Below, piece after piece: positions 9,662 through 59,950 of a stretch of 64,000 nt of DNA. Positions within the stretch are counted from its first letter, which is position 1. Each line of letters opens with the position of its first letter. The DNA comes from Epithemia pelagica (taxonomy: Eukaryota > Protista > Bacillariophyta), in the NCBI GenBank assembly GCA_946965045.2, contig OX337237.1:434001-498000 (forward strand). Reading direction: 5' to 3'. The notes under the pieces are model-generated. The model saw nothing but the letters and a program-made list of their open reading frames with translations. It did not search any database and was not told where the DNA came from. A program made the position numbers and the translations under genes.

Positions 9662-9704
<43 letters not shown>

Positions 9705-9749: not shown

Positions 9750-10290
9750 GCTCCATCCATTCAAGAGCTTGATGGTTCCCCAGTCTCTCTCTCACCCTGT
9801 GTCGATCGCTTTGTATCAATGACACCCAAAATGGTGGAGCGTTTACCAATCGCGATCCACGTGCGACCGGAAAGGAGGGAGATTCGAGGTGCGCGCCGGC
9901 CGTCAGGGGGCTTTGGGCGCACAGGACGACGAGCACATCCGATCCGCAAAAACATCTTCACTATTTTTGATTCGTGGTTTCCCCATTCATTGCGCGCAAC
10001 ACCCAAACGATGTTCCTTCTGGATGATTCGTGGTGGCAACTCTCTCGTTCCCCAAGAAGGAGGCCGTGGTGTGTCGTTTTTCGCTTCTTTTTCTACGAAT
10101 CTCTACATACGAGTTACAAAATCCATTCTACTAAAGTAGTATTCTTGACACACACAAAACAACAAATGTAGTACCGTTCCAACTTGTGCGCGCGCAACCG
10201 TAAACCTCTTGCTTGTCGTCCTTGTCGGTGCGGCACGCTCCACTTCCTCCGCCTCGTGGAGTAACAACACACCTATTGTCCTATGATGCC

Positions 10291-11777
10291 TTACGGCTCA
10301 TCAGGTGTGTGATCAATGTGGGCAAAGGAAAAGACGTGGTCACTGGTGGGGTCCACTTCGCACAAGACCCAGCCGATATCACCCGATCCAGGACATTGGA
10401 CGGCCACGAGATTGTCGGCCAAGCCACCAGGGTTGGGATAGACACTGTAAAAGTGACAATCGCCATGAAACAAGACGACGGGCTTTTCAAAGTCATTGGC
10501 TTCTTCCACGAGGGCATGCCAAAAGTCTTGCATGCCGGTCAAAATGCGCACGGGCGTACTGCTGTCGATACAGTCGCCTTCGCAGCGAAAAAAAGTTGGC
10601 TTGAATGGCCACCATGACACCGGCCATGTCGTACTCCTGGGCAATTTCAAAGGCATGCTTCATAAAGTCAATACCGACATGGTTGCGTTCCCGAAATTCG
10701 GCATTGGCATGTTCACAGCCGGGATCAATAATGTCATGGTAGGTACTGCAGGTCGCATCGACACCGTCGTAAAAGGTATTGTTGGTTCCCGTCACATGAA
10801 TGGCCGCATACATGACATTGTTGTACGTCCACAATTGCATCTCGGGATAGGCCTTGCTGTAAATGCTGGTATCAAGACTGCCGGCGTACTTGCTACCAAA
10901 CATGGTGCGTTCGCCGTCATAAAAGCGGTGACGAATGTAGTCCAAACGCTCCAAGGGATCGTAATTGCCATTGCTCAAGCGATGACAATCCGTCCATTCG
11001 TCTATTGTTGTCGTATAGAAGAAAACAAGTTTTAGTGTGACGATGAGGGCCAATCCACACCTGGATACATGATACCACAAACCAAAAACACATAGGAGGA
11101 CCATTGCGTAGTACTTACTGTCACCAAGCGTCAAGATTCCGGGACTGTCAAACGAGTTGATCAAATCTTCAAAGCGCTTGTAACTGAGTTCCCCACACGA
11201 GGCACCTCCTCCCTTGACATCACCGGCATGAATGTTAAAGGCCAAATCATAACTGTTGACGGCATCGCGCATGGTCGCATAGACATCTCCGTACGTGTCT
11301 TTTTCGCAATTGTCAAACACATTCACCGTTTCGCCACGGTAGGGCAAGTCACCCCACAAGGCAATCTTGTACGGCTCCGAGCTTGCCTAGTATACAAGAA
11401 GTACAGGGAACAAAACAAGACATGAGGATGAAAAGAACAAAAGCAACGGATCAGGATGAATCTTGACAATGTCTCCAATGGTCCAACAACAACAAGTCAA
11501 TCAACAATGCACAGGACTTACCTTGGCCATTTCTTTCTTTCCCTTGCCACCGTCTGTGATTCATGAGAATGGAATCAACCGCCCAACATCACCGGCAAAT
11601 AGTATTATGGAACAACCATGAATGATGAGTCCTTGTCACCCCATGAGAATCACACTAAGTTTCATCCACTATTGAATGGTCCTCACCTTTCTTTCCTTCA
11701 TCCTTTTTGCCTTTTCCGGCCTGAACCATGACGCCACACGAAGACACGAGTGCCAAACAAGCCAAGGAGAGCTTCAT
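10291..11777 (-). CDS. Secreted calcineurin-like metallophosphoesterase, copy 1; join(11777..11687,11553..11522,11386..11119,11001..10291), with a +1 frameshift at the A7 run 10588-10594
   Basis: Signal-like MKLSLACLALVSSCGVMVQA. Motifs WGDLPY, HAGDVK, GD/NEWTDCHR (split by an intron), HVTG, FHGDCH. Splice phases are consistent, including a 32-nt micro-exon. Removing one base from the A7 run restores a continuous frame. Confidence 0.8.
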
Positions 11778-12517
11778 GGTTTAATTTCTGTTATTGTCTT
11801 TTTGGATCGAGGGGATTGCACGAGGAGTCGAATGCTCGTCACGGCTGGATTTTATGACACGGTGTTGCTGTTTTGTCGGTCACATTTCGTGAATCTCCTT
11901 GTTCCCACACACACACACATGCTTGTAGCATAGAATGGCAGGGAGACTTTTCGTTGTGCAAACAACATTTTTGGTGAATCAAAGTTCATGGACCGCCGTT
12001 CCTTGCCGTTGTCCAACTGGAACCAACCAGTGGCTGGACCTGGCCTGTCCCATGACACCGTGAAGCTTGGGTAGAGAGTCTACGGAAGCATGCCATGGAG
12101 GCCAGGCTTGGAGCAACGGATGAACAAGAGAATGTCCAATATCTGTGCATACCGAATTTTTTGTCCATCTTCTCTCACATTCATATTGTTTGTTTGTTGG
12201 AGTATCGAGTAGTCTAGAGAGATCCAGAACAGGGGGTTCTTGAACTGCATCCAGGAGATGCAACAAAGATTCATGTGGATTGGATGGAATCTTTGGGTCT
12301 TTTTTTGGTTCGTTGCGGTTCGCAGTTCGCCGAGTTCGATCGGCTGTTGCGGGAATCCGGTCGCGTCGAGTGGCGCAACGGGGCGTTCTTTTGAAGGACG
12401 CCCCACTGCGGGGTTTGCTACGGTGGCTATACCTCCTCGTCATCGTTGCCACAACAAGCCCAAGCAGGAGCAACCGCCAAGTCCTTTCACTTGTTGTTTG
12501 GATCGTCGTCTCGGCGC

Positions 12518-13629
12518 ATGCAACGATTGGGTACGACCGTGTGGGCGGCTGGTACGATCGGTTCGGTAACAGCTTGGTTTTTGGGTTATATCAATCCAGA
12601 ACTCATGATGCGACCTCGCAATCACAATGCTCTCTATGTGCACGAATGTGACTGGAACATGATCTGGTGTCAAGACCAAACTTTTTCCAAGAACGACGGC
12701 ACACTTTTCACATCGCTGACGGTCCATCGAATAGATGCCTCTGGGAAGAATATCCGAGGGCAGCTGCCGAATGATCTGGGACTCTTATCAAATCTAAAAT
12801 CGCTAGATTTTAGATTCGACAAATTGACCGGTACCATTCCAACGGAATTTGGACAACTCAATCAACTCACCTATCTGAATTTTTTTGACCACGATCTCTC
12901 TGGATCCATTCCCGACGAAATATCCGGTTTGTCGGACCTCCGATTGCTAGATTTTCGGAATAGTCAATTGAACGGTGCCATTCCAACGCAATTTGGGCAA
13001 CTCAATCAACTGACCTTTCTGAATTTTGGTTCCAACGATCTTTCGGGACCCATTCCCCATGAACTATCCGGTTTGTCCAACCTCCGTGTGCTAGATTTTT
13101 CGTACAATCAATTGAATGGTACCATTCCAACGCAATTTGGGCAACTCAATCAACTGACCTATTTGAGTTTGGGTTACAACGATCTTTCGGGACCCATTCC
13201 CGTCGAAATGTCAAGCTTGTCGAACATCAAATCGCTCGATTTTGAGCGGAATCAATTGAATGGTACCAAGGATTTTGGACAACTCAATCAACTAACCTCT
13301 CTGGTGTTTTCGGACAACGATATCTCAGGACCCATTCCTAATGAGATTTCAAATTTGACAAGGCTGATATCGTTGTATTTTGACCAGAATCCAAGGCTGC
13401 AAGGCACTATCCGAGCTCTCTGGCCTCACTCCCGCGTCTCGATAACCTACATGTCTATCTAACCAACTTGACTGGAGAGATGCCACTTTGTGGGGCAGTT
13501 GGTAGGACGTACTTTGCTGTCATTGCCGACTGTGATTCGGTGGAATGTCCATGTTGCACATATTGCTGTCCCGCTTTGGGGGATATTCCGGCGTCGTCGT
13601 GGCTTCCTCCCGAATGTGGCGTGGTTTGA
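12518..13629 (+). CDS. Chimeric DUF3179-fragment/LRR gene; in-frame fusion at 12640/12641; -1 frameshift at 13411-13412 before the Cys-rich cap
   Basis: 12421-12640 matches the reverse complement of 20679-~20900 (DUF3179 gene). 12641-~13740 matches the reverse complement of 22554-~21370 (LRR gene and its 3' flank). 24-aa plant-specific-type LRRs. Adding one C restores ...ADCDSVECPCCTYCC...* ending at 13629. Confidence 0.7.
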
Positions 13630-14007
13630 CGAAATACGAGTAACCTGTTCGTTCCAAAGTATTAGGAGTACAAGGTATGGTGAGTTTACTATCTAGATAC
13701 TAGAGGGGTAGCTTCGAGTCAAAAGAATCATTTTCCTTAGAAGGAATGCGCCGCCATGGGATAACTTCTTGCTCTCCTGCAAGAGAAATGGAATCAAGGC
13801 ACATAAAAGGTTGTCGTATCCTAGTACTTTCGTCTGATGGAGGTCACAAGAAAGGGAACATTGAGAAACTATATGGCAATGCATCTTTTAAGTATAAACA
13901 GTATGAATCGGGAACGAAATCATATATCCCCGCTTTTCTCATGGAATGGGCACGCTTCCAAACGGCCGGACCCTGGCGGCGCGTCAACAAGTGAAGGACC
14001 CCCTGGC

Positions 14008-15321
14008 TCACTCAAAGGTCAATTCGGTAATGTGTTTGTGGGTAAATTCAAAGACGTGTGGACTGGTCGGGTCCACGTGGCACAAGATCCAACCAATGCT
14101 GGCATGTCCCGGACACTGGACTTGCACCAGATTGGGTGCCGCGTCAAGAGGATTGGACTGGACCTTATAGAAATGTCCATCTCCGTGAAACAAAACGACG
14201 GGCTTGTCCTCAAACTGGTTGGTTTCGGCCACCAAGGCTGTCCAAAAGCGTTGCGACCCCGAAAGAATTCGATTTTGGTGAATCATATTGGCTTGCATGG
14301 CCACCAGAATTCCAGCCATGTCCTTGTCCTTGGCAATTTGAAAGGCCTCTTGTACGAATTGAATTGCCGCCGTGGTACGAGCTTGGGATTCATTCTTGGC
14401 TCGTGCGCAATCCTGGTCGAACCGATTCAAGGAGGCCGTACAATTGGCATCGACATTGTCGTAATAGGCATTGTTGGATCCGACCATGTGAACCGTGACA
14501 TACAAGACATTGTTGTACGTCCACAATTGCATTTCGGGGTACTTCTTCTTGTCGTACAGTGTCACGTCCATTCGTCCTTGTCCCAAGATCTTGTGTTTGT
14601 CGTCGTAAAAGAAACGATCCCGGAGATGGTCCAGACGCTCCAATGGATCGTATCCACCCACATGATCACGATGACAATCCGTCCATTCGTCTACGTAAAG
14701 TAGGATGGATATGTGGCAACGATGATGAGGAAGAAGCAACATGGAACACGAAACATAAAGACACACCCGCATGTTGTTCGATACACAACGGCAGTGAAAC
14801 AACTATCACACTTACTGTCTCCAAGAGTCAAGATTCCCGGACAGTGCAACGAATCCATCAAGTCTTGAAACCGTGTGTAACTCGTGTCGTTGCACTGCCA
14901 CAAAGTACCAGTCCCTCCCCACAGAATATCCCCGGCATGAATGGTAAAGGCATGCGGATATGCGTTGATGGAATCACGCAATTGGGTGTAAATGGTACCA
15001 TACGGATACGGGTCATTGGCGTCGTCATCATTGTCATCAAAGACACGAGCCGTCGTTCCCCGATACGGCAAGTCGCCCCACAAGGCAATGGTATACGGTT
15101 CCGTGTCTTTCTGTATCGTGTATGGTGCCAACAAAACACGGGGAAACGGCTGAGAAGGACGAGTATTCTCCATCACTGGACTTTCCGTCCTGCAGATCTT
15201 GACATGTGTGTCTCTCGCCAGAAACGCAACTTACATGGATCTTGACCTTTCGTTTCTTTGCCTTTACTCCTGCTCCCAACGACAGCAAAACAGCCACAGA
15301 CGATGTCCATAGCAGCTTCAT
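14008..15321 (-). CDS. Secreted calcineurin-like metallophosphoesterase, copy 2 (intact); join(15321..15235,15110..14816,14690..14008)
   Basis: Signal-like MKLLWTSSVAVLLSLGAGVKA. WGDLPY, HAGDI, GD/NEWTDCHR, HMVG, FHGDGH. The intron in GDN is at the same position as in copy 1 and all phases are consistent. Confidence 0.85.
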
Positions 15322-15360
15322 GGTGCGTTTGTGGGTGTATGTTTGTCTTGTACGCACGTG

Positions 15361-15361
15361 G

Positions 15362-15403
<42 letters not shown>
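15361..15403. repeat. (GTT)n microsatellite upstream of the phosphoesterase start
   Basis: Directly visible. Confidence 0.9.
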
Positions 15404-15404
<1 letters not shown>

Positions 15405-16341
15405 GGTGGAGGAGGATTTGGCAAGTAGCTATCGTCACGTTGTTCTTGTTGTTGTTACTGTGGAGGAATCGGCAAAGCGATGTCGTTCGAAACGCACAGT
15501 CGATGGTGTGGGACACCCTCGTGTGTTTCCAGCTTCTGGGACTTGTTCTCCGCGTTGCGCTTCTCTACCGAGTCTTGCTTCCAAATTTTGGAAACGCACC
15601 TCCATGCTCAAAAGGAAATCCGTCGTCCTCTAGAGGTTCATGGGGCTTCCATTGTCCACGATTCCTTCCGTTGATGGATGTCGCACACCCGAATAGTAGT
15701 CCGCGATCCCATGACGATTGGAAAAAAAGAGAGGATCGATCCTTTTGTCGACTTGTCGATAGCAAGATCTTCCAGGATGGACACGCAATGTGTGATGGTC
15801 ATTGTCATTGGAAGCAACATTCATGATTCATTTGGCAAACCATGACTGATACAGCGACCATAGAGCAACCGATTCGAAATCCCTATCGCTATCGCCGTTT
15901 CTATGTCGAAACATAATCCAATGCGAGTTGCTACCCGATCTGTTATCTGTGGTGTAGCAGTACCTAAAGACGTGTCTGAAGCAAAAGCCTCCTCATCTAC
16001 TCTCGTACGTAGCTTGTCAATGGGTCATGCCAAAGGTTGCAACAAAGAATGGCTTCTATCAGCGACGCTGTGTCAAAGAAAAGAGCGCAATCACATTCAA
16101 GGTAGCTGTGAAAAGTTCGACTTTTTATATCCATGTGTATTTATGTAAATACTGAACTAGAAATGGACTCGGTTTCGCATGCAGGATAAAATACAGGTAC
16201 TGTTACAGAAGCAAGTGTCAAAAGAAATAGCAGCGACTCGGATGTATGATGGTAGTGGTGGGGGTTGTCCAAGAACCTTTTAGGTGATGAAGCAATTGCA
16301 AAACTGTGTACTTTTTCGGATCGCAGCTTGGCAAGTAAGAA

Positions 16342-16683
16342 TCACTTGCTTGCCGTGTCATCGTGATCGTTTCTTCGAGTCGTCTCTTGTTGCGTAGAAT
16401 CGTCGCTCACAATACTGTTGACAGAATCATCGTCATATTTTTCCGACGACTGATACTGTCGAACATCCGTAATGCCCACTGCTTCCATCAACAACCGTCG
16501 TTTCATGCGACGAAGCTTGGTGGCCAATCCAATGGGAGAATTCAACAGGTCGTCCGTCGTAGTAGTTGTTTGGGTGCGGGTCGACTTGGCGGTGGCGGTG
16601 GATGTGGCGGCAATTCTTCTTTGTGGAGGACTCTGGAACGAAGCGCAGGAATGGTTGGCACAGAAATCATTGGAGCAAGCCAT
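16342..16683 (-). CDS. Small hypothetical protein (MACSNDFC...LATKLRRMKRRLLMEAVG...)
   Basis: ATG-initiated ORF with protein-like composition; no family recognised. Confidence 0.3.
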   Translation of the reverse strand: MACSNDFCANHSCASFQSPPQRRIAATSTATAKSTRTQTTTTTDDLLNSPIGLATKLRRMKRRLLMEAVGITDVRQYQSSEKYDDDSVNSIVSDDSTQQETTRRNDHDDTASK

Positions 16684-17609
16684 GGTGTTACCGAAACAAT
16701 TGGAACTTGATTTTTCGTCTTCTTGTCTGGATTGATTGTTCAACCGTTGGATGGATACACACAGACAGTGTGTTTTTCGATTCTTGGAATTATGAGATCG
16801 CTACACGAGAAAGGATCTTTCCCACCGTGACACGCAGAACGCAGAGACCAGAGACACGAGACACACTCCGCGAAAAAAAGCTGGTGAGGAAGAATTTGGA
16901 GCGATTCCCCGTCAGTTCGCAAGAAGCGAGGGGGACTATTGCCTTCACAGAGTGGTAACGGCTTTCTTAACGGATTTTGGACGGATTTACGAAGCAAGAC
17001 GCTAACACGATCACGCTTAAGTAGGATGTGGGATCTAAATCCATTGCCCCTCAGGAATTCGCATAAGTCACGCGGTCGCACTTCCAGGAAGGTCAAGAAT
17101 GGAACGATGGAAGAACTTGTGGGACTTGTTCCATTTTCTTGAGCTTCGTGGTGGGGCGAAAGGGTGAGCAGTGGGGGGATCTACCCACTCTTGGCATCTA
17201 CCTACTCCTAGGTAGTTTTTGCGCATGTCTATTTCAGAGGGGAGATGTTGTTGGAGTTGTTATCTTGCTCCTCTAGGACTACTTTCTTGCGTTTGCAATC
17301 GAAGGCATTCTGTTCACCAACTCTCTCGAGTTAAGGTTTCGATAACAAAGTCAGTTTATTAGGAATAAAAGGTCTTGAAATGCTTTAATATATGACCTTT
17401 CGAGTGGAACGTTGCTTCCCGAGCACGACGAAGGAGGGAAATATGCAAACCGAAACGCTCCTCGCAATATCGAAACAAATCAACCCAACTCATTGACACA
17501 GCAATGTTTCTTTCCAAGACTACAATCGTGTTTTAATCGTTGAACTATCCATTCATACTGTTGGATGAACGATTGCTGTTCAATCTACTACCGCTTCTGG
17601 CTTTGCTAG

Positions 17610-36770: not shown

Positions 36771-39410
36771 GATGTCACTACCAATTCAACCACGGCCGCC
36801 TTGTTGTGGTGCGAGTATCAACGGGGCGACGGCTTTGACAAAAGTACCGGTACCGCTCGCGCCCCCTTGTATTATCAAGTGGTGGATACCAATGATACGA
36901 CACCGTGACGATTCACTACTTTGTGTATTTTCCCTGGAGTGGATCGAGTAGTTTTGGCGCCTGGACCAGTCTCAATGGACCAGTCTCAATGGAACGTCCG
37001 AGTATACTCGCATGACGGTACCGCCCTGGGGCGTTCACGAAGGCGATTGGCAACTCCTCAGTGTCACCCTTTGCAATTCGCCCCAAGTTTCCAGGCCCTT
37101 GGCCGTGACCTATCGACAAGACGAGGGTCGATTTGGACAAGTGTACGATTGTATCCAAGGAGAGTGTACCTTTCATCAAGCACTCGACGACGACGGTGTC
37201 ACCACTTTGTCCTTTCATCCCGTGGGCTTTGTCGCCCTCCATACCCATGACGTGTATGCCGTGGCGGCCGAGGAAATTCTCTACGATCAAGTATGGCCCT
37301 TGGAATTTTGGGTCAATTTGCAAGGCTTTTACAGTGTCCATCGAACCGCCTATTACAATCATAATGATAATACTAAGGACGACACGAATCACCCATCGTC
37401 CACCCAGCCCGAAAACAATGATGATGATACCAATACTACTACAACGTCACCACCACCCTTTCGACGGTTGCTTCCCATCCCCGAAACTCTCGTACGATTG
37501 CCACGCAATGCCGATATTCCCACGGCCGCCGATCCTTCCGAATATTGGGTGGCCTTTGGAGGACGATGGTACGTACCATGTAGGGTACACACAATAGCCG
37601 TGACAAGAATTGTTGTTTTGTGGCTCTGTTTGCAGAGGGCGTGCCTGTTTTCCCTCGTGGCAAACTCTATATCTCACTGAACAAGTGTTCTTGCGTGTGT
37701 GCATGTGTTTGTCTCTCTCTCTCTTTGTTGTGGACAGGGGCCGTCCCACGACGGATCCGACGACACTCTTGTTTGACTATGACGAATTACCGATTTGTGT
37801 CGACCATTCCACGACCCGCATCATTCCGTGTCCCACGGCGGAGGAAAATCCCATGTTTGATTTGGTCTTGCAATGCTGGGATTGGTTCCCCCCTCGTCTC
37901 CTCTCATGGAAGGAGGCAAGTTGCTCTTGGATTTTTTAACCTCCCACCATGTCGGACAAGCCCCGTATGGACCGGCGGCGCATCCCACCTATTTGACCTG
38001 GACCCGACCCGGCAATGCTCCCTTGTGGAAGCGGCTGGATCCGGAGGAGGATGGTTCCGCATTTTGCGAACGCTTTCGAGTCATTCCCGATACATTTCGC
38101 ATGACCCCGACGCAAGAAACCTTACCGGCCGAACGGGCGGCCTGGAATCTTGTCATTTTGTGTACGGCCGCGACACTCTTTACCATTGTCTATGTCGTCT
38201 CGACCAAGTACATTCCGGTTCAACCCGTCTTTCAGTCCGACCCGGCCACGGGCCATTTGGTCTCGCCCGACAATCGCAAAGATCGGTTGTGGGTCTTTCA
38301 TTGGGCCTTGGTCTATGCCGTTGTCTATGCCGGCTGTAATCGGAGGAATGATTTTGTACTTTATTGGCAATGATCGATTGTTTGTCTTGTTGGATTGCTT
38401 TTTTGGCAGTGACTTTGAAACGCTGGTACGAGGCTTTCAAGTGATTGGAGTCCTCTTGGTGATCTTGGATACCTCGGGACTTATTGTGGTCATACTCCGA
38501 AGTGAAGATACCTGGAGAACCATGAAACGAACCTATTACGACATTGTCCAAGATCGGCAAGGTCTCCAAGACTTTGAAGACTCGATTCGGATTCCATTGA
38601 ATTCGTCGCGGGTCCTGTTGGCCACTGCCCTCGTCAATGCCTTGACCTTGCCCAGTTTGATTTTTACCGTTCTCATGGCGGTCTTGGGTGTCATGAGTGT
38701 CGGAATGGCCTATGGAATTGGAGAATTGTGTTCCTCCATTGTGGGCTCCCTCGAAGGAATTTGTTTTCGATTTACCTGGTTGGGAATGGAGGAAATTCAA
38801 TGCGGAGAAAATTTTCATGTCTTTTGCAACGGTACGTGGATGAATGGTAAAGTGTTGTTGTTGTTTCGGAAAATCCATCTACGGTGGTAGAGTCTCATAT
38901 GGATGGCTGTTTTTTGTTGTGGTGCTGCTACTAGAATGGGCCCAGCGCGAAATTGTCTTGACCCTGTGGGGTGCCTTTGTCGTATTGATTGGGCACTTTT
39001 TCTTGATTGCCGTGGCCTCCATGGCACGCATTACGCTTCGTTCCGTCTTGAGAGAAATCCAAGTCCTTCAACGACGAACCCGTTTTTTGCAATCCTTGGC
39101 GCTTTCCCGCAACAAAGCACCAGAGATTTGGAGGGAGGACGATTCCGACACTAATCATGACAACAACAACGACGACGATGACGACGAGGACGGTAGTAGT
39201 AGCAACAACGAGAATGGGATTCGCGAAACCGACGAGGCCACGGAACCAATGGCGCACGATTGTGAAGAAGAGGAGAACCTCTTGAGCGCGGAACGATCCG
39301 ACGATACTATAGAGGAGACAAGTTTTTTCAAGAATGATGATAATGAGGAGAGCATGGAGATTTTCCAAGCGACAAACTCTCACAATGACTCGAAGCAACA
39401 ACAACAACAA

Positions 39411-40918: not shown

Positions 40919-41742
40919 CGAACGTGTTGTTGCAATGCGGCCAAGGTCTCGGCCGTTACGGTCCGTCCAATCCATGATGATTGGAAGGAGGATGGCAGAC
41001 AGGAAAAGACGCAGACAAAGTCATGCTTCCACAATTCCTGCCAACCGGCGTGTCGGCACGTGTGCCACAAGGGGACCCGGCAGTGGAGAGGCAACCGAGT
41101 TGAGGTTGTAGTACTCGTCGTAGGATCGTCCTTGTCGTCGTCGTCGTCCTTGTCCTCGGCCATGACTGCTTCACAACAATCCGTCATCCAATGAGATGCC
41201 ATGGTACATTCCACGGTTTGAACCAAGTCGCGATCCCCCGTATACAGGACTTGCACATGATGCAAGGATTGCAAGTGTCGCAAACACTGCACATAGCGCG
41301 CTTGCATGGTAGTACGAGTCGCAGTGGCTTGGTGGCTGTCGTCGTTCGTTCGGGGTTCCACGTGCAATTCCACCAAGGGCAGGTCCATGGCGTGCGCTTG
41401 CAATCGCATGAGGGTCAACGAATGAGCTTGAAACGACGTTTCCATGTGAAATGGACCAAAGACGGCCAAGGCCACGACGTGGACCATGGGATCTTGCCAG
41501 GCATGCCACAAGGCCAAATGGCAATTCTTTCCGCCCGTCCACGAAATGGCAGCGGGCACAGCCTCCGGTCCAATCGTTTGCGGAATGTACCGGGCAAACT
41601 GCGATTGGTCCACCGTAGTTTTGTCTTTGTCCGACACTGAAGTATCTTCCCTGGGTGATGAGAAGAATGATAGAGAAGCCATGTCGTCGTTGCTCTTTGT
41701 CTTTTGATTTTGGTGGTCGAGCTCGTTGCAAGCGATCGTCAT
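40522..41742 (-). CDS. Diphthamide-synthase (Dph6/MJ0570)-like ATP pyrophosphatase domain protein
   Basis: ISWTGGKNCHLAL PP-loop-like motif, FQAHSL..M..QA, GD.D, PLW, GDNGEFHTMCLDGPMY. Start codon uncertain. Poly-Q is encoded by the (GTT)n run at ~40868-40917. Confidence 0.75.
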
Positions 41743-42352
41743 GGTGGATCCGAACAAAACGATAAAAAAATGAGGGGTTCGAAGCACGTGTCTCGAGAGT
41801 CAGCGTCCCATTAGCGACTGGAACGCTACTGAGCAGAGAAGACCGTCCCGCTGCGGTTAGCATCCATAGACATGCCAATCCTATTACTGATACTCCTATG
41901 TCAAGTGTCAAGAGCGAATCGAAAGCTAGGGTCTACGGTAGACACAATGCGTTGCTCAAGTCTTCATTATTATTTTGGGGGCGCCCGAAAAAACGGTTCG
42001 TCTATAGTATGGGGCAAGCGGGCTGTCGGAAGTCGGAATGTAGGAGTAGAGGGCCATCTGAAGTCTGAAGACAAGACAGAAAGAGATTTCGCAGCAGTAG
42101 ATAGTGGTTCGTCGATCGGAATGATGCCGCCGCATCCAAAAGAGCACACTCCCCATAGATTACACTAGACCTACCTAGGTAGAACCACAACAACCACATG
42201 AAGGGATAGATTTGGAGTGATGGATGCCGAATGCCGATGCCGATGCCGGGCACATGATCATGAGATGCGGAATGCGGATCGTTTCTTGTCAAACGCGAGT
42301 CGAAGAAGTGCCTGGCTCGAGTACTTGGCGCGGGCCGAGTCCGGAAGAGTAT

Positions 42353-42580
42353 TGTAACCCCCAAGACTCACTCGCGACTACCTTCACCCTCTGGGGGGAA
42401 TAGAATAGAATGTGCGGATAAGGGATGCTACGTGTCTTATACTCTTCGTACAAACCAGTTCCTAAAAGACTAAGCTTACACTACGAACGAAGATTTCCCC
42501 AAAAGTAGTAATTCGGTACGAGGTAATGACCCTTCCCTTACACCCGTGATTCCCAGTCCCGCTACAAGGTCATTCGGACA
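42353..42580 (-). mobile_element. 3' LTR of the copia element (about 228 bp, TGTCCGAA...TTACA)
   Basis: Begins with TG right after a purine-rich PPT-like tract (GCGGGGAC) downstream of the RNase H stop. Its first 104 bp recur at 54638-54572 + 51099-51063. The distal end at 42353 is inferred from TTACA only. Confidence 0.7.
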
Positions 42581-42612: not shown

Positions 42613-45600
42613 TTATAAGCTTGCGGGGTTGGGAATTGTACGTGATGCCAGTGTCGGCGGACCCGATGCACCAAATGCAGACGAGTAAGTGAACTGTGAT
42701 AATAGCTCGTTCCGGCGGTCCCGTGACAACATCTTGGTAAAAAGGTCAGCAATGTTGGTTTCCGTATCCTCTTTCCCCACACGGAGAATCCCAGCCGCAG
42801 CCGCTTCCCGGACGGCATGGTAGTTAATGGCATTGTGCCGTTTCGACAATACAGAGGATGGCAAGCTTGTGTTCTTGACCACACCGCGGTTATCGCATAA
42901 CAGATTAGCAGGTGCAACAACAGGTACGCCAAACATTCGCAACTTGTATCGGATCGCCACGATCACTTCTTTCGCGATTCTCATTGCCACGAACTCACTG
43001 CCAAAACTTGATGTTTCGACCGTATTTTGCCGCCTAGAGTACCACAAGATGGGCGCATTTTGCAGCATGACCAGGATTCCGCTGTGTGACCGTCTTGTCA
43101 CCAAATTACCGGCGTGGTCTGCGTCGACGAAGCATGTTACCTGGATCGGCTTCCCAAGCGGCACCGGCATGTTAACAGGGAGCTCTTCGGCCACATCTCC
43201 ATAGAACTCTCTCCACTCGCTCATCTGCACTTGTGCAAAGCACGATTCGTCCAAATCAACATCTTTCGGATCGAACACCAGTTTCATCTTTGGGTGTTTC
43301 TTCAGGTAAGCAACTATGTGGTATGCAGCTTCGAGATGTCCCTGTCTCGGGTTTGCCAAATATTGCGACAAGAGTGACACCTCCAGGTAGATATCCACTC
43401 GTCCGAGCTCGACGGCCCAACGCAGAATCCCAATCAGTTGTTGATACCGTGCTGTCAATTCCTTGTCTAACTCTTGACTCACATGAAGTTCTGGTTTATA
43501 TGTTGTCGGTACAGGCACCTTCGCCGTCGTCTTGAGGTGTTTCCCTGATGCGTCGTCCTTTAGCATCCCTTCGACGATCTTAATTGCATTGCCAACGTAT
43601 TTCTCACTATTCATTCCCCAGGCCCACGAACCATCGGGTAGGTTATGCCGATATATCTGCGCGCCAAGATATATGTCAGGCTCACCCAAACTACCTGCCT
43701 TGATTTTATACTTCTTGTCGATCTCATTCAACACAGGCTCCGGATCATCACTAACCAATAGTAAATCATCCACATATACCAAAATAAGCTCGTAGTATTC
43801 CTCTCCGTTCTTCCTTTTCGACTTCCGCCGTAGTACGCAAGGGTCAGCCAGTGTATCCTTGAAGCCCATCTTGTAAAGCAACGCCATCATGGTGGCCCGC
43901 CAACTCGCTCCGGAGGATTTCAGGCCGTAGAGTGCCCTCACCATCAAGCATATTCGACCCTGGAACTCCTTCCCTACCTTTTCCCTGCATGGCGCGTTCA
44001 AGTACGCGTTTCCAATATCACATGCCAATATGCGTAGTCCTTTCAATGCGGCGACCAGAAATGCCACCCGGATCGAATCGCGGCTCACCACGCTCGAATA
44101 CGTTAAGCTATTCGGCGCGTCAGTCATATGCCCTCCTGCAACGAGTCTTGCCTTCCGAGTCAGGTCCATCTTCACGTCGAAAACCATGTGGCAAGATATT
44201 TCTGTGTGGCCAATCAGCTGTCGCCCTGCTCTCACTTCTCCTAGATCGAGGTCGTCCCTGGCTTCCCAAGCTACCTTCACTACCCGCAGTTCCTTATCTA
44301 TAGCGTCCCGCCCATAGGTAGTTCCAGTAACCTCGTCTATCTTGAGTGCCTCTTCCACGGAATGAGGTAGTTGAATCCTGTACTTCTTCGTCGTCCGCCA
44401 ATACTTTTTCTTTACCTTCTTAACTATCCGTCGCAGATGATTCAGTACCTGCGGTACCCACCAGTGGAACGCTGGCTCTTGTTCGATCTCTTGGGCGACC
44501 GCATATTCCGCCAATTCGATTGCGTATCCCTCTTTCACATCTTTCAATGGGACCCACTGCTGGTCCCCGTTCTTCCATTCAACTGCGATCTCCCACCCTT
44601 TGGTCGTCCTTTTCGGGTGTTTGTTTCCGTTCGAAGAGAGCACGAACCCATCCTTGCGTTCCACGGCGTCCCCGTTTCTCCTGTGCCCAATAATCTCTCT
44701 CATCATGAGATGTAGTCTACCCTAACTGTCCAACTGTGCGTGCAAGTTCTCTGCCACGACATTTGCCGTGTACTCATGCAACACCCCACCTGGGAACTTA
44801 ACCGAGTAAGTCCTGGTGTCAAAGAGAGGATTATTGTGCCGCCTCCCAATTGGTTTTCCATCTAACCCCTTTTGCCTTTTTATCACCGTTCCGACCAACT
44901 CCTCACCCCCTATATCCATCCTTATCTCGGCACCCACGTATTCGTCGTACCCATCACCGTATTCGTCTGCTTCCTTTGTTTCCTCTTGGATCATTGCTCC
45001 GTATTCCTCATCGGTCGGTATCACGCCTACCGTCCGTCCCCGTCTTTCTTCTTCCGAGTCCAAATCTGTATCATCTTCCAGGTATCCGGGCCCAGACGCT
45101 CCGTGGTCGGTAAAGTTCTGGTCATTTAACCGTTCCCCAACAATCAACTTGAATTGTCGGACTCGTTCCCTTATTCCTGAGTCGTCCATGTCCTGCTGGG
45201 TCACATGCTGCACAGTAGTGCGAGCGATAACCTTGCCTGCTTTCGTGAGTACCCAATAGCACAAATCGCTACCGATGCGGTGTGCTATCCCCAACCAATG
45301 CCCAAGGTGCGGTTGCTCGTCGGTGGTGTCTCCTTTCGAGTTGTCATGGTACCAGACTACGTCAAAGAAAGCAAAATCCAGCCATTCCGAAATGTCTGGG
45401 GTATCCCCAGCTAGTCGTTCCAACCCTGTTGTGCCATCTTGTCCCCGGGCGACGCGGCTGAGGATACCTGCTTCATAAACCAAACCATAATCCCAAAGTC
45501 GTTTTGGGACCTGCAAATCAGCCATGCGACGCCACCACCGCTGCTTGAAGAGTCCGATTTCACGTTCTGCCTTGTGGTTCTGTTTCCCAGTTCCCTTTTC

Positions 45601-50937: not shown

Positions 50938-51065
50938 TGTTACATGAAATCTACCCTGATCCACAGGTGGGAGTCTTACACAGCTCCTGCCAAAATCGGC
51001 CACATAGCCGGGGTAGTTTCGACACATTTGTCATGCATTGCCAAATATCGGCCACAATTTCAACA
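50938..51065 (-). mobile_element. Candidate 128-bp LTR of the second copia (TGTTG...TGTAACA)
   Basis: Starts exactly where the first element's LTR match stops, has TG...CA ends and lies 83 bp upstream of the gag ATG. No second copy in the window. Confidence 0.4.
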
Positions 51066-51514
51066 CTACGAACGAAGATTTCCCCAAAAGTAGTAATTCG
51101 GTACGAGGTACCCCCAAGCATGGGGCGACTTGGTCAGTCGCACTTTTTAAGTGCATTCCCTTAGTCACCCCCACGGCTCGAGGGCCCCAAATCGCCAATT
51201 TCTCGACTCAGATACAAAATGCATTTCACCTCCACAGAGCCACCACGGAGGCAAACTAGTGAGGACGATAACATCCATCATGGCTACCCGCACCTCCAAC
51301 CCCAGCCACACCAACGACAATGATACTACCCACGATGCTTCCATGAGGGCGGAATCTTGCCAGAACCACCCTTCTCTCGACCATGGCACTCTTCATTCAA
51401 GCCTTCAACAAAGTAAAAACGACAAACCAGATGACCCTGTCGAAATACCTCAAGCATCCCTTTTTCGACACAACCGAAACCCTCCGGCCACTCCTCTTTC
51501 AACTACCAATTAGT

Positions 51515-51979
51515 CCCATGGGCGGCCTTCACTCGATTGCGGGCCCACTGCCATTTAATCTTCGTCCAAGTACACCGCAGCTTAAGACTGTTGTACTCTA
51601 CCACAACGCATTCAAAGGAAAGTTGCTGTCATTGCAGAATGCAACCCAATTAGAGACACTTATTCTCCACGGTGGCAATGAATGGGCCGACAATGTTCAG
51701 CTAGAGCCATTTTGCAACAATCAAAAATTTCCTCGAATGAATCGCTTTGTGGTTCGTCCTTGTACGAACAATGCCGAGGAAAGCCACATGCTCCTTCCAT
51801 ACTGCTCCTGTTGTCACTGCTGTCCTGACTCTAGTACGTCAGAGTGCCATTTGTATCATTGGTTCCCCGAAACAGAAAATGCTTGGGACACGCGGTATAC
51901 CAAGGATCGTTTCCGTACTCGGGAAGTCATGCTGTCCGAGACTGACCTTTTGAAACTCTCAAACCCCAATAAAAACTAA
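51515..51979 (+). pseudogene. Captured 3' fragment of an LRR gene
   Basis: IAGPLP, LKTVVLYHNAFKG, LETLILHGGN and a CSCCHCC cap; no N-terminus. Confidence 0.65.
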
Positions 51980-52094
51980 CGATACGAAGAATTCCACGTC
52001 GTCATGAGGAGCTGCATGAAACTGTTCAGAGCTTTTGTCGTCAACTGCAGAAAGCGTCAACTACATAGATAAAATCATGATGGTATTTTAATTC

Positions 52095-52630
52095 TTACAC
52101 ATTGGGATATTCAACTCGTAAACCCTGTCTGTCAAGACTCCATATCAGAGTTGGCTGATATTCGCGACAAAAGCCAGGATCATGAGACACGGCAATTACA
52201 GCACCTCCCCAGCCACATTCAGGGTCATGGCGTGTGCCACCTTCCGACTGAGGCTTATTAATGAGTTGAATCAAACTATCTCGCGTTTCGACGTCCATAT
52301 TTTCCGAAATTTCGTCCAAGACTAACAACGACAATCCCCATGCGGCTTTGTTGTTTTGCCAATTGTTGGCGGACACGGCCGATTTGTGGGCCAACCACAG
52401 TCGAACATGTTGACCGGCCGACAAGGCGCGAATGGGACGCAAAACAGTATAACGTGACAATCCATAATCTCACAAATGCTGTCGTATCTGTGTTTTGGTC
52501 CAGGACGATGAGGACGTGATGGCACTAGTATGATCATCCTTGAGTGTCATGGCTCGGAGAAAGAATTCCATGGCAGATTGAGATCCGTGGTCTCGAACCA
52601 AATCATGAAGCGCCGTCTGCGGGAAATACA
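52095..52630 (-). pseudogene. Captured 3' fragment of an ABC-F-like ATPase, with in-frame TGA at 52470-52472
   Basis: YFPQTAL...IRQHL*DYGL...RPIRALSAGQHVRLWLA (signature-like), LLVLDE (Walker B), VSHD (H-loop); no Walker A. Confidence 0.75.
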
Positions 52631-53322
52631 AACAGCTTTGTTTGCTATTCATCGTTCGGCAATTCATTGGGAGCAACACCAGCAGTAAGAGCCGCAATGG
52701 GAAAGGCTTGGAAGAAGGTGTCGGGGGAAGGACGTCGCATGAAGCGAGTAGATGAGGCATCCGATGGAATGGTGGACATGGAACTAGCTGCTTCAAGGCT
52801 CAGAAAGGTTGGTGGTTCGGATTCCTCGGAGGTTCGACTTGGATGGGCCAATGGATCCTTCTGCGCCATAGGGGTTTCATAGGCTTGCGGATCGACCGTG
52901 GGAAACGAAGCGAAACGAGGCAGAGACGAAGGATTGTTGTTGCTGGTGGATGGGGTGGTGGTTTGGTTTTTGGCGATGCTTTCATCTTGGTTGTTAACAG
53001 ACGCCGTCGACCTTTCGGAAACACTGCGAGCGTCAAATAGCTCCCTTACTTCCTTCTGAGTGAGGCGGTGCCGTTTGTGGGAGGAAGACGACATTAAAGA
53101 AGATGTTCTGGACCACTGCACCTCCACCACCGTGATGAATGAGGGTGCGTTGCATTTTGTATCAGAGTCGAGAGAGACCAGGGACACAGCGCACGATCAG
53201 GTATGTGTCAGTTGTCCAGAAAGCGGGCTGGCGTGCGCCCGCGCGCAAGAAGAAAATTCGTCAGATGCAACACGGGGTATCGTGGAAAACCATGGCGCTT
53301 CAGAGGTCGGTCCGAAACCCTA

Positions 53323-53415
53323 AACATGTACCTTTTTCCATTCGAAACCTTACAATCGTCCCTTTGACCATGGTTTGACTGGTTGTTACCTTTCGAATGG
53401 AAAAAGGTACATGTT
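53323..53415. repeat. 93-bp foldback with perfect 25-bp arms
   Basis: aacatgtacctttttccattcgaaa (53323-53347) and its exact reverse complement (53391-53415). Confidence 0.9.
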
Positions 53416-54571
53416 CTGATCTTCATTTTCTACTTGACATTGTGTACAAGGTGTGGTGCGTTGCGTGGGATGGTTGGGTGGAGTGTCGCGTCCCGTCCCA
53501 TCCCATCGTATCGATCGAAACACAGAAGTAATAAAATTATGCATACGCTATAGTGTTGTATTTCTAGCCATTAGACCAGTCGTCGTGATTGTTCAGCTCC
53601 TGCTGCTGCGTTTCCGCAAAGTCGGCTGGGACGACTCCAATAGGGCAAGCCAGTCTCTTCGTCGTCGTCGTCGGGCACAAAGTCACGGGCCTGGTAGACA
53701 AAGGGCGACGAGGTCGATTCAAAGACACGGATATCGAAGCTGACACATTGCTGACACGCCGGTCACTGGTGAGGTACCTTCCAAAGACTGACGCATTGAT
53801 GGGCAATTTGTGATCCGCGTTGTGGCTCTCGTTCGTCTCCTTGGTCTTGTTACTCTCGTTGCCCTTGTTCGTCGTGTCGCTTTCGTTGCCCTTGTTGCTC
53901 TCATTGGTCGTGTTACCTCTCGTTGGTCGTGTTGCCCTTGTTGCTCTCGTTGGTAGTGTTGCTCTCGTTGGTCTCGTTGCTCTTGCTCGTATTGGTGATT
54001 GCTGGAAGATTGAGAGGTTGTTTGGTTGCCTTGCTTTTCACCTCAGCCAGCCCTTCCCCAGCATGCAACTTGTTGCCTCGGATGCAAGTACTGCAACGGC
54101 AATTGTTGATGTACGTCGACATGTTTGGTTGTTGGTTTTGTGTTTGCACTTAGCACATCGGTGCTTTGTCATCACTGGAGAGAGAGAGCGGGTGCTGCGA
54201 GTCCTTCCAACAAGCTGAGTCGACGATCGTGTACCACATCTTGTTGGTCCATGGCAAGCAAGGTAGGATCATTGGGTCGTCGAGTATCCAGAAGAGGAAA
54301 GGGGCACGGAGGTACGGCATTGATTTTGATGGAGTGTCCCCTCCCGGTCACGTGGGTTGTTGTTACGAGTACTCTCGTAGTTGTTACGCTGTGAATTTCT
54401 CTCTTTACTGACTAATTGTCAGTAAACTGAGAATGTAAGCGTAACACTCTAATTAAGCCCCACCACATACCTGATCGTGCGCTGTGTCCAGGTCGAGCCG
54501 TGGGGTGAGTAGACGAATGCACGAAGTGCATTCAATCACGCGTGATTGGACTCACCCCATGCTTGGGGGTA

Positions 54572-54638
54572 GGTACGAGGTAATGACCCTTCCCTTACAC
54601 CCGTGATTCCCAATCCCGCTACAAGGTCATTCGGACAT
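54572..54638 (-). mobile_element. 5' part of the split 5' LTR of the copia element; continues at 51099-51063
   Basis: After removing the TIR element and one TSD copy, the reassembled 104 bp differ from 42580-42477 at one position. Confidence 0.85.
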
Positions 54639-54845: not shown

Positions 54846-55962
54846 CTAATATCTATCTTGAGGATTATGATTTTGGCTCGGAGTACTTGATCTGTCTCGG
54901 ATAGGACGTTGGCGCTTTTCTGCCGGCTTTAGAATCTGAAAGGAACACATGAGAGTCTCATCAATGGACATCATGGCTGCGGCATTGTCAAATTCACCAC
55001 AATAATTTGGAGCCGAGAAAATTGTCACTAGTTTCCTGTTGGCAAAGAATTCGTAACCATCTTCCACCACTTGATGAGCTCGGATGATGAGATCCAAGTC
55101 ATTTTTGGCACAAAACAGTGACACAATGTCTTCCCCAAACGTAAAGGAAACTCCGCGATCGTTTTCTCCCCATCCATCAATTTCCTTATCCGGGTCGGAC
55201 CAAATCATATCACACAAGAGCCCCGTGTCCGGAACATCCGTGGGCCGTACAATCCTGTTCACATGGTGCAAGCTGGTCAATTCGGGGCTCAGTCCACCGT
55301 GGACACAAAAGATTTTCTCATCGATAACGGCAGCCGCTGGAAGACAGTTGAAGACGTCCGTGAAAGACTTCCAAAGCTTGATGGAAAATCTTCTCTTGCA
55401 CTCATCGTAAAATCCGTAAATACGATTGATGGACGCACATTCATGATTCCCACGAATGCAAAAAAAGTTTTCCGGATACTTGATTTTGTAGGCCAGCACC
55501 ATGGTCACGCATTCGATACTTTGTTTTCCTCGGTCGACGTAGTCTCCCAAAAACAGATAGTTGGCTTCGGGAGGGAATCCTCCATACTCGAACAATCTAA
55601 GCATATCATAAAATTGGCCATGGACGTCGCCCACCACCTTCACAGGGGCCACGAGCTCGAGCATCATGGGTTGCTGAATCAAAATGTCTCGTGAGCGGAG
55701 GCACACCATTTTAATCTCGGCTTCCGTTAGATCGGCAAGCTTTCCTGGTCGGCACCCACGGAGCCTTTAGTGCCAAATGTTGTCGTCGTGAAGCAAACAT
55801 ACCACATGAGAGGGAAACATTGAGACGTTTTGCCATTGTCGTGGAATCTCTCAAATACGTTGCTGCTTACCTCAAGAGCTTTTCGATCACAACATCGATA
55901 GGATCAGTTCCAGCACCATCGTTGGAATCCAGACCATTGCTAGACATTCTTGAACTGTCCAT
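54846..55962 (-). CDS. PP1: Protein phosphatase 1 catalytic subunit, copy 1; join(55962..55871,55764..54846)
   Basis: [44 protein letters not shown] 92-nt first exon (MDSSRMSS...IEKLL) joins in phase. Confidence 0.95.
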
Positions 55963-56112
55963 AGCGAGACCTTCCGATGGTCATTTTGGTTTTGAGGCCA
56001 AATGCAAAAGTGAGCAAGGATGAGATAGAAAAGAGCCTTTTTCTCCCAATAGTAGTGTACACCGTACGAGGGCGTTCTGTCTGTCCGTCTGTCTGACGAA
56101 AGTAGCAAGGTA

Positions 56113-56726: not shown

Positions 56727-58652
56727 TACCCATGATATTTATGCCGTGGCGGCCGAGGAAATTCTCTACGATCAAGTGTGGCCCTTGAAATTTTGGGTCA
56801 ATTTGCAAGGCTTTTACAGCGTCCATCGATTCGCCTATTACAATCATAATGATAATACTAAGGACGACACGAACTGGATCCGGAGGAGGATGGTTCCGCC
56901 TTTTGCGAACGCTTTCGAGTCATTCCCGATACCTTTCGCATGACCCCGACGCAAGAAACCTTACCGGCCGAACGGGCGGCCTGGAATCTCGTCATTTTGT
57001 GTACGGCCGCGACACTCTTTACCCTTGTCTATGTCGTCTCGACCAAGTACATTCCGGTGCGACCCGTCTTTCAGACCGACCCGGCCACGGGCCATTTGGT
57101 CTCGCCCGACAATCGCCAAGATCGGTTGTGGGTCTTTCATTGGGCCTTGGTGTATGCCGTTGTCTATGCCGGCTGTATCGGAGTAATAAGTTTTGTACTT
57201 TATTGGCAATGATCGATTGTTTGTCTTGTTGGATCGCTTTTTTGGCAGTGACTTTGATACCCTCACACAAGGCTTTCAAGTCATTGGAGTCCTCTTGGTT
57301 ATCTTGGATACCACGGAACTTATTGTGGTGATGCTCCGAAGTGAAGATACCTGGAGAACCATGAAACGAACCTATTACGACATTGTCCAAGATCGACAAG
57401 GCCTTCAAGACTTTGAAGACTCGATTCGGATTCCATTGAATTCGTCGCGGGTCCTGTTGGCCACTGCCCTCGTCAATGCCTTGACCTTGCCCAGTTTGAT
57501 TTTTACCGTGCTCATGGCGGTCTTGGGTGTCATGAGTGTCGGAATGGCCTATGGAATTGGAGAATTGTGTTCCTCCATTGTGGGCTCCCTCGAAGGAATT
57601 TGTTTTCGATTTACCTGGTTTGGAATGGAGGAAATTCAATGCGGAGAAGATTTTCATGTCTTTTGCAATGGTACGAGGATGAATGGCAAAGTGTTGTTGT
57701 TGTTGTTGTTTCGGAAAATCCATCTACGGTGGTCATTCACAACAATCCGTCATCCAATGAGATGCCATGGTACATTCGACGGTTTGAACCAAGTCGCGAT
57801 CCCCGGTATACAGGACTTGAATGGCATGCAAGGATTGCAAGTGTCGCAAACACTGCACATAGCGCGCTTGCATGGTAGTACGAGTCGCAGTGGCTTGGTG
57901 GCTGTCGTCGTTCGTTCGGGGCTCGACGTGCAATTCCACCAAGGACAGGTCCATGGCGTGCGCTTGCAATCTCATGAGGATCAAGGAATGAGCTTGAAAT
58001 GCTTCCTTCATGATGGCGAGTGGACCAAAGACGGCCAAGGCCACGACGTGGACCGTGGGATCTTGCCAGGCATGCCACAAGGCCAAATGACAATTCTTTC
58101 CGCCCGTCCACGAAATGGCGGCTGGAACGGCCTCCGGTCCAATGGTTTGGGGAATGTACCGGGCAAACTGCGATTGGTCCACCGTAGTAGTGTTTTTGTC
58201 TGACACTGCAGTATCGTCCCTGGATAACGTTGAGGATGATGGAGAAGCCATGTCGTCGTCGTCGTCGTCGTTTCCCGTTTTCTTCTTCTTCTTCTTCTTT
58301 GGGTGGTTCCGCTCGTTGGAAGTGTCATGGTGGAGATCCGAACCAAGATCGAGGAAACCATGGAAATGTTCGCGAAGCACGTGTCTCGAGAGTCAGCGTC
58401 CCATTAGCGACTGAAACGCTAGTGATCAGAGAAGACCGCCCCGGGGGAGCAGAGGTTAGACTACCTAGTTGCCCTCCCGTTTGTTAGTCCTCGCCTGGGT
58501 AGTCTACCTAGACTACCTAGTCCTGGCCCGGCGCGTCGGTCGACGTTTCCCTGCGGGGGCGGGGAGCGTGCGGCAGCGTTTTAATAGAGATATTGTGTTT
58601 TTTTTGCGGTTATTATCCATAGACATGCCAATCCTAGATTACTGATACTCCT
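56727..58652. repeat. Deleted duplicate of 37246-41898 (Vps62-like and Dph6-like gene fragments)
   Basis: 56727-~56870 = 37246-37388; ~56875-57732 = 38035-38888; ~57735-58443 = ~41170-41850; ~58605-58652 = ~41853-41898. Two internal deletions of about 0.65 and 2.3 kb. Confidence 0.9.
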
Positions 58653-59767
58653 AATATCTATCTTGAGGATTATGATTTTGGCTCGGAGTACTTGATCTGT
58701 CTCGGATAGGACGTTGGCGCTTATCTGCCGGCCTTAGAATCTGAAAGGAACACATGAGAGTCTCATCAATGGACATCATGGCTGCGGCATTGTCAAATTC
58801 ACCACAATAATTTGGAGCCGAGAAAATTGTCACTAGTTTCCTGTTGCAAAAGAATTCGTAACCATCTTCCACCACTTGATGAGCTCGGATGATGAGATCC
58901 AAATCATTTTTGGCACAAAACTGTGACACAATATCTTCCCCAAACGTAAAGGAAACTCCGCGATCGTTTTCTCCCCACCCATCAATTTCCTTATCCGGGT
59001 CGGACCAAATCATATCACACAAGAGCCCCGTGTCCGGAACATCCGTGGGCCGTACAATCCTGTTCACATGGTGCAAGCTGGTCAATTCGGGGCTCAGTCC
59101 ACCGTGGACGCAAAAGACTTTCTCATCGATTACGGCAGCCGCTGGAAGACAGTTGAAGACGTCCGTGAAAGACTTCCAAAGCTTGATGGAAAATCTTCTC
59201 TTGCACTCATCGTAAAATCCGTAAATACGATTGATGGACGCACATTCATGATTCCCACGAATGCAAAAAAAGTTTTCCGGATACTTGATTTTGTAGGCCA
59301 GCACCAGGGTCGCGCATTCGATACTTTGTTTTCCTCGGTCGACGTAGTCTCCCAAAAACAGATAGTTGGCTTCGGGAGGGAATCCTCCATACTCGAACAG
59401 TCGAAGCATATCATAAAATTGGCCATGGACGTCGCCCACCACCTTCACAGGGGCCACGAGATCGAGCATCATGGGTTGCTGAATCAAAATGTCTCGTGAG
59501 CGGAGGCACACCATTTTAAGCTCGGCTTCCGTTAGATCGGCAAGCTTTCCTGGTCGGCACCCACGGAGCCTTTAGTGCCAAATGTTGTCGTCGTGAAGCA
59601 AACATACCACATGAGAGGGAAACATTGAGACGTTTTGCCATTGTCGTGGAATCTCTCAAATACGTTGCTGCTTACCTCAAGAGCTTTTCGATCACACCAT
59701 CGATAGGATCAGTTCCAGCACCATCGTTGGAATCCAAACCATTGCTAGACATTCTTGAACTGTCCAT
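58651..59767 (-). CDS. PP1: Protein phosphatase 1 catalytic subunit, copy 2; join(59767..59676,59569..58651)
   Basis: Same exon structure and motifs as copy 1; 8 aa differences in the large exon. Confidence 0.95.
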
Positions 59768-59950
59768 AGCGAGACCTTCCGATGGTCATTTTGGTTTTGA
59801 GGCCAAATGAAAAAGTGCGCAAGGATGAGATAGAAAAGAGCCTTTTTCTCCCAATAATAGTGTACACCGTACGAGGGCGTTCTCTGTCTGTCCATCTGTC
59901 TGACGAAAGTAGCAAGGTAGTAGGGGCGGAACAGCAGAAGAGCAAGACCC

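Follow-up and report, generated by a model that had tools for sequence, protein, structure and literature searches.

That DNA transposons capture and shuffle fragments of host genes is documented well for a few superfamilies, mainly in flowering plants. AcademH is a group of DNA transposons reportedly forming a lineage of the Academ superfamily. AcademH elements encode a large DDE transposase and, as a separate gene between the same terminal inverted repeats (TIRs), a superfamily 2 (SF2) helicase of the DEAD/Helicase_C, RecQ-like type; two reports give target site duplications (TSDs) of 9 or 10 bp and hosts among animals and fungi (PMC10045372, PMC10799480). Academ elements are most abundant in Pucciniomycotina (PMC5751038). 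The Pack-MULEs (MULE, Mutator-like element) and other Pack-TYPE elements of plants are non-autonomous TIR elements with a TSD and without a catalytic transposase, whose interiors consist of fragments of host genes with surviving parent loci and which have been amplified after capture (PMC8903248, PMC5861414). In diatoms, a MULE of Phaeodactylum tricornutum has been described as a recently mobile cut-and-paste TIR element with a 9-bp TSD, TIRs of ~200 bp, a transposase with MULE and SWIM domains and an E3-ligase-like open reading frame (ORF); no helicase, no DUF6589 domain and no captured host fragments are reported for it (bioRxiv 10.1101/2023.01.02.522487). Here we describe a 3,463-bp block at positions 51109-54571 of a 64,000-nucleotide stretch of the genome of the diatom Epithemia pelagica (contig OX337237.1, positions 434,001 to 498,000; hereafter the window). 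The element in this block is very likely a non-autonomous derivative of an AcademH-like transposon, the interior of which was replaced by host DNA and which was amplified afterwards.

The block was split into five parts by a search of the whole genome (60.5 Mb in 23 contigs; Cn:start-end denotes coordinates on contig n) with its 3,463 bp and by local BLAST, element positions being window positions minus 51108. Element positions 1-428 match other members of the same TIR family with 81-87% identity, and 1555-2074 and 3380-3463 match this family again (89-98%). The sole match of positions 429-1557 is C3:2161793-2162923 (94.4%), and positions 2074-3381 are a separate repeat, for which contig 5 has a 1,303-bp counterpart at 98.4% identity. 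A copy on contig 11 has a length of 2,158 bp, is 99.5% identical to the block minus its 1.3-kb part and shows the precise unoccupied site of that part. The block is therefore a 2,158-bp non-autonomous element in which an unrelated 1,308-bp TIR element is nested, 82 bp from the right end.

From left to right, the block begins with the helicase-side end of the family (51109-51536, plus strand), in which a 17-bp TIR within a long imperfect TIR is followed by the 5' region and first codons of a helicase gene; these 428 bp are 81% identical to a coding copy on contig 6, described below, and 87% identical to a subfamily on contig 1. The captured host DNA follows as one contiguous segment of 1,129 bp (51537-52665) with sharp junctions, which is absent from the coding copy. 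The next part, 52663-53181 (minus strand), belongs to the transposase side of the family interior and is 89% identical to the contig-6 copy, without a catalytic domain. The nested non-autonomous element occupies 53182-54489, with a 2-bp duplication AG, perfect 26-bp TIRs at 53182-53207 and 54464-54489, and its 98.4% match at C5:1276290-1277592. The terminal 82 bp (54490-54571, plus strand) hold the right long TIR, including the perfect 17-bp TIR at 54555-54571, and are contiguous with 53181 in the contig-11 copy. The apparent head-to-head junction inside the block is explained by the long imperfect TIRs together with the nested element inside the right one.

The cargo contains the 3' ends of two genes that face each other. 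The last ~150 codons and the stop codon of a leucine-rich repeat (LRR) gene lie at 51537-51979 (plus strand), with 87% amino acid identity to residues 647-796 of the parent, and the 3' end of an ABC-F-like ATPase gene forms a 121-residue ORF at 52095-52460 (minus strand). At the parent locus on contig 3, an intact 810-residue ORF with LRR_8, LRR_4 and LRR_1 domains converges on an ABC gene with two ABC_tran domains. Homology between the two loci starts and stops inside both coding regions, with an abrupt change to family sequence; the right junction has 2-3 bp of microhomology and the left one none. The DNA therefore passed from the host into the transposon, as a single segment from one locus.

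A first-pass annotation of the window, made without database searches, had recognized both the LRR 3' end and the ABC-F-like 3' end facing it, and both are real. The intact parent it called for was found by mapping the 1,129-bp segment to the contig-3 locus. Its description of the cargo as pieces of several unrelated genes was overstated for the window copy, the LRR and ABC ends being one contiguous segment of one locus, and the at least two further host protein-like fragments that it listed turn out to be the N-terminus of the family transposase, the 5' remnant of the helicase gene and the nested element. That element has copies of its own elsewhere, so the block is not a single element and need not have been inserted as one unit. 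The block has no catalytic domain; the ORF at 52645-53187 (minus strand) comprises the N-terminal 159 codons (about 52654-53130) of the family's own transposase, with 83% amino acid identity.

A 198-residue ORF at 51383-51979 reads through the left junction. It has the 87% identity to parent residues 647-796 given above, and its first ~47 codons come from transposon sequence. An in-frame fusion between the helicase N-terminus and the LRR fragment was considered and rejected: the helicase remnant ORF (51151-51513) and the ORF at 51383-51979 are in different frames. Comparison of the captured LRR fragment with its parent gave a ratio of nonsynonymous to synonymous substitution rates (dN/dS) of 1.01, so the fragment is unconstrained and evolves neutrally. 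The cargo carries no sign of selection.

The perfect 17-bp TIR, TACCCCCAAGCATGGGG, is located at 51109-51125, with its inverted copy at 54555-54571. The two sites in the window compare with 0.02 expected from shuffles, and 18 exact sites were found genome-wide, against none for a reversed control pattern. The terminal repeats as a whole are imperfect and extend over about 80-110 bp, which include the perfect 17 bp. A 9-bp direct repeat, GGTACGAGG, flanks the element at 51100-51108 and 54572-54580. The same target is found uninterrupted, once, at 42517-42525 in a 103-bp sister long terminal repeat (LTR) at 42478-42580 (minus strand). The occupied LTR is split into halves at 51063-51108, of which the last 9 bp (51100-51108) are the left TSD copy, and at 54572-54637, which starts with the right TSD copy (54572-54580), both on the minus strand. 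The two repeats are 103 bp each with 1 mismatch, and minus-strand ORFs lie between them, including one with an RVT_2 domain at 42613-44706, which identifies the repeats as the LTRs of a young copia-type element. Since this retroelement is on the minus strand, the insertion occupies its 5' LTR, and it is the 3' LTR that is empty. The cargo element landed in the 5' LTR after the copia-type element had integrated.

These boundaries agree with what had been read from the window alone: exact 17-bp TIRs at both ends, the 9-bp direct repeat at both flanks, an empty site in the copia 3' LTR, and an insertion younger than a young retroelement, which is here confirmed as copia-type. The alternative of an 11-bp TSD with asymmetric ends was discarded, as it would need an incomplete left end without its TA; complete ends give 9 bp. 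Read evidence was taken from Logan short-read contigs of four runs from one study. Two joints in these contigs, one without the entire insert and the other without just the nested element, represent unoccupied copies at paralogous places and do not establish alleles.

Pairing of the exact TIR sites yields a family of one coding copy, one deletion derivative, four copies with the LRR/ABC cargo, three copies of 2,538 bp and one miniature inverted-repeat transposable element (MITE). The cargo copies are on contigs 10, 11 and 7 and, truncated, on contig 17; they are 98.8-99.5% mutually identical and have differing TSDs (CCATGCATCC for the contig-11 copy, AGGAAAGTGG for the contig-7 copy). All three sister copies, those on contigs 11, 7 and 17, lack the nested element. 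The deletion derivative, 3,060 bp, arose by internal deletion from the 16,072-bp coding copy on contig 6. The MITE, 118 bp at C1:584511-584628, consists of only the two family termini and has a perfect 10-bp TSD, ATTGTTACCT. Among the eight copies with both ends, six have a TSD of 10 bp and the window copy has 9 bp, the deletion derivative being ambiguous. Other members also carry host DNA, and the usual TSD of the family is 10 bp.

The 2,538-bp subfamily, with copies on contigs 1, 3 and 17, has a 1,610-bp interior that is missing from the coding copy. This interior is made up of three abutting pieces, matching C1:5356288-5357052 (96%), C5:1109251-1109398 (86%) and C4:1468274-1468964 (93%). 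The piece from contig 1 comes from a signal peptide peptidase gene, of which it covers the 3' half; the parent spans the whole Pfam profile, and the captured copy is frameshifted. With fragments from three loci in a second subfamily, capture is therefore recurrent: host DNA has been captured at least twice in this small TIR family, once as a multi-locus mosaic. The central claim of the first-pass annotation, a non-autonomous TIR element that captures host coding DNA, is upheld by the parent locus, by the amplification of the cargo to four copies and by this second subfamily.

The sole coding copy with a matching TIR, C6:3281976-3298047, is 16,072 bp long, or about 7.75 kb when a nested LTR element is subtracted. 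Its two genes are convergent, each beginning beside a TIR. One is an open ORF of 1,615 residues for the transposase, in which DUF6589 is the only Pfam match; the other is a 642-residue helicase ORF with DEAD and Helicase_C domains and RecQ-like motifs (SF2). The nested 8.3-kb LTR element, with 758-bp LTRs that are 100% identical, is inserted exactly where the helicase ORF ends, so that this gene has probably been truncated, and very recently; no rest of the gene was recognized past the LTR element on contig 6. The genome contains about 30 paralogous DUF6589 ORFs of 1,600-1,800 residues, with 51-61% identity and many without internal stops, a diverse and apparently young AcademH-like population.

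An exhaustive HMMER search returned 493 relatives, of which 40 were used for alignment and structure modeling. The AlphaFold (AF2) model of residues 650-1360 has a confidence score (pLDDT) of 90; an initial model from 8 close homologues, with a pLDDT of 55, was not used and was replaced by the one from the 40-sequence alignment. An exhaustive VIA-align search with the model placed the P-element transposase (Z 8.2, 354 residues) and Hermes (Z 8.1) at the top, followed by lower matches to retroviral integrases, Tn5, ISCth4 and RAG1. A Foldseek search of the model against the Protein Data Bank (PDB) gave nothing significant, and phmmer against the PDB sequences gave nothing. Residues D816, D1059 and E1314 are invariant in the 29-38 relatives aligned at these positions. 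The structural matches indicate that the DDE core of the transposase has an RNase H fold and contains a helical insertion. Searches for MULE, Transposase_mut and SWIM domains in the coding copy and in the 40 relatives, at E values up to 10, detected none.

A relative with 25% identity is encoded on an unrelated eukaryotic metagenome contig (JGI Ga0214477_100477, 9636-16998), where a DUF6589 protein and a convergent helicase gene make up a complete 7.4-kb element with perfect 25-bp TIRs. The helicases of this element and of the contig-6 copy are homologous (E 2e-28), and two further relatives are annotated as DUF6589-helicase fusions. The metagenome contig also has a gene for a chitin synthase that bears a Cyt-b5 domain, and a second metagenome shows this insertion as well. 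DUF6589 relatives are enriched in Pucciniomycotina (rust fungi) and Mucoromycota, so that Academ-rich fungal groups are also those in which these relatives concentrate.

The contig-6 copy thus has the arrangement described for AcademH, with a large DDE transposase and a separate SF2 helicase gene between its TIRs, and the TSDs of the family are of the 9- or 10-bp length given in the AcademH reports. It differs from the AcademH elements in those reports in its diatom host, and the window copy differs further in being non-autonomous and carrying fragments of host genes. With the Pack-TYPE elements of plants, the family shares host-gene fragments with an identifiable parent, cargo copies at different sites, the joining of fragments from three loci in the sister subfamily, and a chimeric ORF that begins in transposon sequence. 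Selection on the cargo, looked for as in Pack-TYPE elements, is not seen, given the dN/dS of the LRR fragment and the frameshift in the peptidase fragment. The family is set apart from the plant elements by a transposase that is DUF6589/Academ-like and not of Mutator, CACTA or hAT type, by a stramenopile alga as host, by only 3-4 copies per subfamily and, in the window copy, by cargo that is a single segment across two convergent gene ends. In the literature searched, no paper was found that links Academ to diatoms, nor any report of an Academ derivative with host gene fragments; DUF6589 receives only incidental mention there.

Several observations weigh against the assignment proposed here. 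The AcademH-like label is a provisional one, based on architecture, TSD length, fold and the overlap in taxa between DUF6589 and Academ. The helicase gene of the contig-6 copy is cut near its 3' end by a very young LTR element, and a fully intact partner with matching ends is not present in the assembly. The metagenomic relative has an 8-bp TSD, ACTTACTC, not one of 9-10 bp. Finally, no listed piece of the Logan contigs bridges either junction, so that the assembly is neither confirmed nor refuted by them.

The window copy had originally been read as a Pack-MULE-like element of the Mutator kind, from its TIRs and 9-bp TSD. To our knowledge, MULEs carry no helicase gene, whereas one is carried by this family. 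A TSD of 8-11 bp with TIRs is indeed found here as in MULEs, but it is common to AcademH and hence not discriminating, and the modal TSD of the family is 10 bp. Canonical diatom MULEs with 9-bp TSDs do exist; the published one, however, has the ~200-bp TIRs and the MULE and SWIM domains mentioned above (bioRxiv 10.1101/2023.01.02.522487). The search for an autonomous partner with the same TIR and a MULE DDE transposase led to the contig-6 copy, which, like its about 30 paralogues, carries DUF6589, and the domain searches detected nothing of MULE type. No solved MULE transposase is among the structural matches, and the fold alone leaves room for a very distant kinship between DUF6589 and MULE transposases. 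With these points taken together, we consider a Mutator-superfamily origin very improbable. A similarly small chance is given to a composite transposon, in which two inverted-repeat modules were fused head to head and are mobile only as the 3.46-kb unit. The internal inverted repeats (51201-51230 with 53144-53173, and 53182-53207 with 54464-54489) and the single TSD pair around the whole block would be expected from such an arrangement. However, the former pair forms the inner portion of the long TIR typical of the family, and the latter marks the ends of an independent element, which on contigs 1, 5, 7 and 13 has its own copies and 2-bp TSDs. The unoccupied site in the contig-11 copy is precise, short-read contigs hold a form without the nested element (joint 53182-54502), and the whole-genome search found no other 3.46-kb arrangement with different TSDs.

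It is more improbable still that the contig-3 locus copied transposon DNA, or that the junctions are chimeric products of assembly. Junction-spanning reads were not obtained, and a second family copy is located just 23 kb from the contig-3 locus, both of which would leave some room for these readings. Against them, the contig-3 homology lies inside long intact ORFs that extend well past it, whereas the transposon copies have only the two 3' ends. The segment is present in four transposon copies, which are about 99% identical to one another and 94% identical to contig 3, and a chimeric join would not produce a perfect TSD together with, in the sister LTR, an exact empty site. A non-autonomous derivative of an AcademH-like transposon with captured host DNA is the reading that we retain.

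The mechanism proposed for this derivative starts from an established anatomy, parent locus, direction of capture, amplification and family protein set. The element has kept both ends of its parent, namely the long imperfect TIRs with the 5' regions of the helicase and transposase genes, whereas 1.13 kb of host DNA, a copy of the tail-to-tail LRR/ABC-F-like locus on contig 3, has taken the place of its coding interior. Capture may have taken place while an excision gap was being repaired, through template switching or end joining, as has been proposed for Pack-MULEs; the junctions show 0-3 bp of microhomology. After capture, the element was amplified to at least four copies, the window copy entering the 5' LTR of the young copia element. 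The element itself has no catalytic domain and must depend for its mobility on an enzyme acting in trans, presumably a DUF6589-type DDE transposase that recognizes the shared ends and makes 9- or 10-bp staggered cuts in the target. The element-encoded RecQ-like helicase probably takes part in transposition. The unrelated 1.3-kb TIR element inserted into the right TIR either before or after the landing in the LTR. A role of the helicase in capture is speculation; such a role has been raised for helicase-bearing transposons in general (PMC10799480).

Pack-type capture thus occurs in a diatom, and in an AcademH-like superfamily that is different, little studied and helicase-carrying. One small family has two independent capture histories, of a two-gene segment in one case and of three fragments, each from a different chromosome, in the other. 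Such a record suggests that cut-and-paste transposition and repair lead to Pack-type capture as a general by-product, rather than its being peculiar to Mutator elements in plants. A wider proposal, which we regard as possible but rather doubtful, is that diatom AcademH-like transposons form a systematic gene-capture system ('Pack-Academ') that arose independently of plant Pack-MULEs and repeatedly joins and spreads exon-bearing fragments from several loci; the RecQ-like helicase might favor template switching, and some chimeric ORFs might become new genes. With few young copies, known parent loci and an almost intact coding partner, the family offers a tractable system for the mechanism of capture. 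It also corrects annotation, since in this genome elements of this kind would otherwise pass for fragments of LRR, ABC or peptidase genes.

The family of the nested element has about 7 copies with perfect 26-bp TIRs (GGACACAGCG...) and 2-bp non-TA TSDs (AG in the window, GG on contig 5, AT on contig 7), and no coding partner was found for it. Its copies include 53182-54489 in the window, C5:1276290-1277592, C1:4999360-5000663 and C7:2225766-2228007. The last, a 2.2-kb variant, has an ORF with a weak Metallophos match (21.8 bits versus a cut-off of 21.5). It abuts a 75-bp terminus (C7:2228008-2228082, ending in ...CCCCTGCTTGGGGGTA) of a paralogous AcademH-like family, downstream of the paralogous transposase ORF C7:2218492-2223033; thus two related nested elements each lie about 75-82 bp from an AcademH-like tip. 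The contig-7 sister copy of the cargo element (C7:865495-874015) contains a nested copia-type LTR element with RVT_2, 213-bp LTRs that are 100% identical and a 5-bp TSD, TACTC. This element sits 65 bp from the terminus and 17 bp from the insertion point of the 1.3-kb element in the window copy. The long TIR may be an insertion hot spot.

Elsewhere in the window, large direct repeats were noted between 54846-56112 and 58651-59919 (98%) and between 37242-38888 plus 41170-41850 and 56727-58443 (87-95%), which are consistent with segmental or tandem duplication. The genome also has at least 11 full-length silicon-transporter genes (PF03842), as fits a diatom, several of them as tandem pairs on contig 11 (C11:1001834-1006098, 3159754-3166955 and others).

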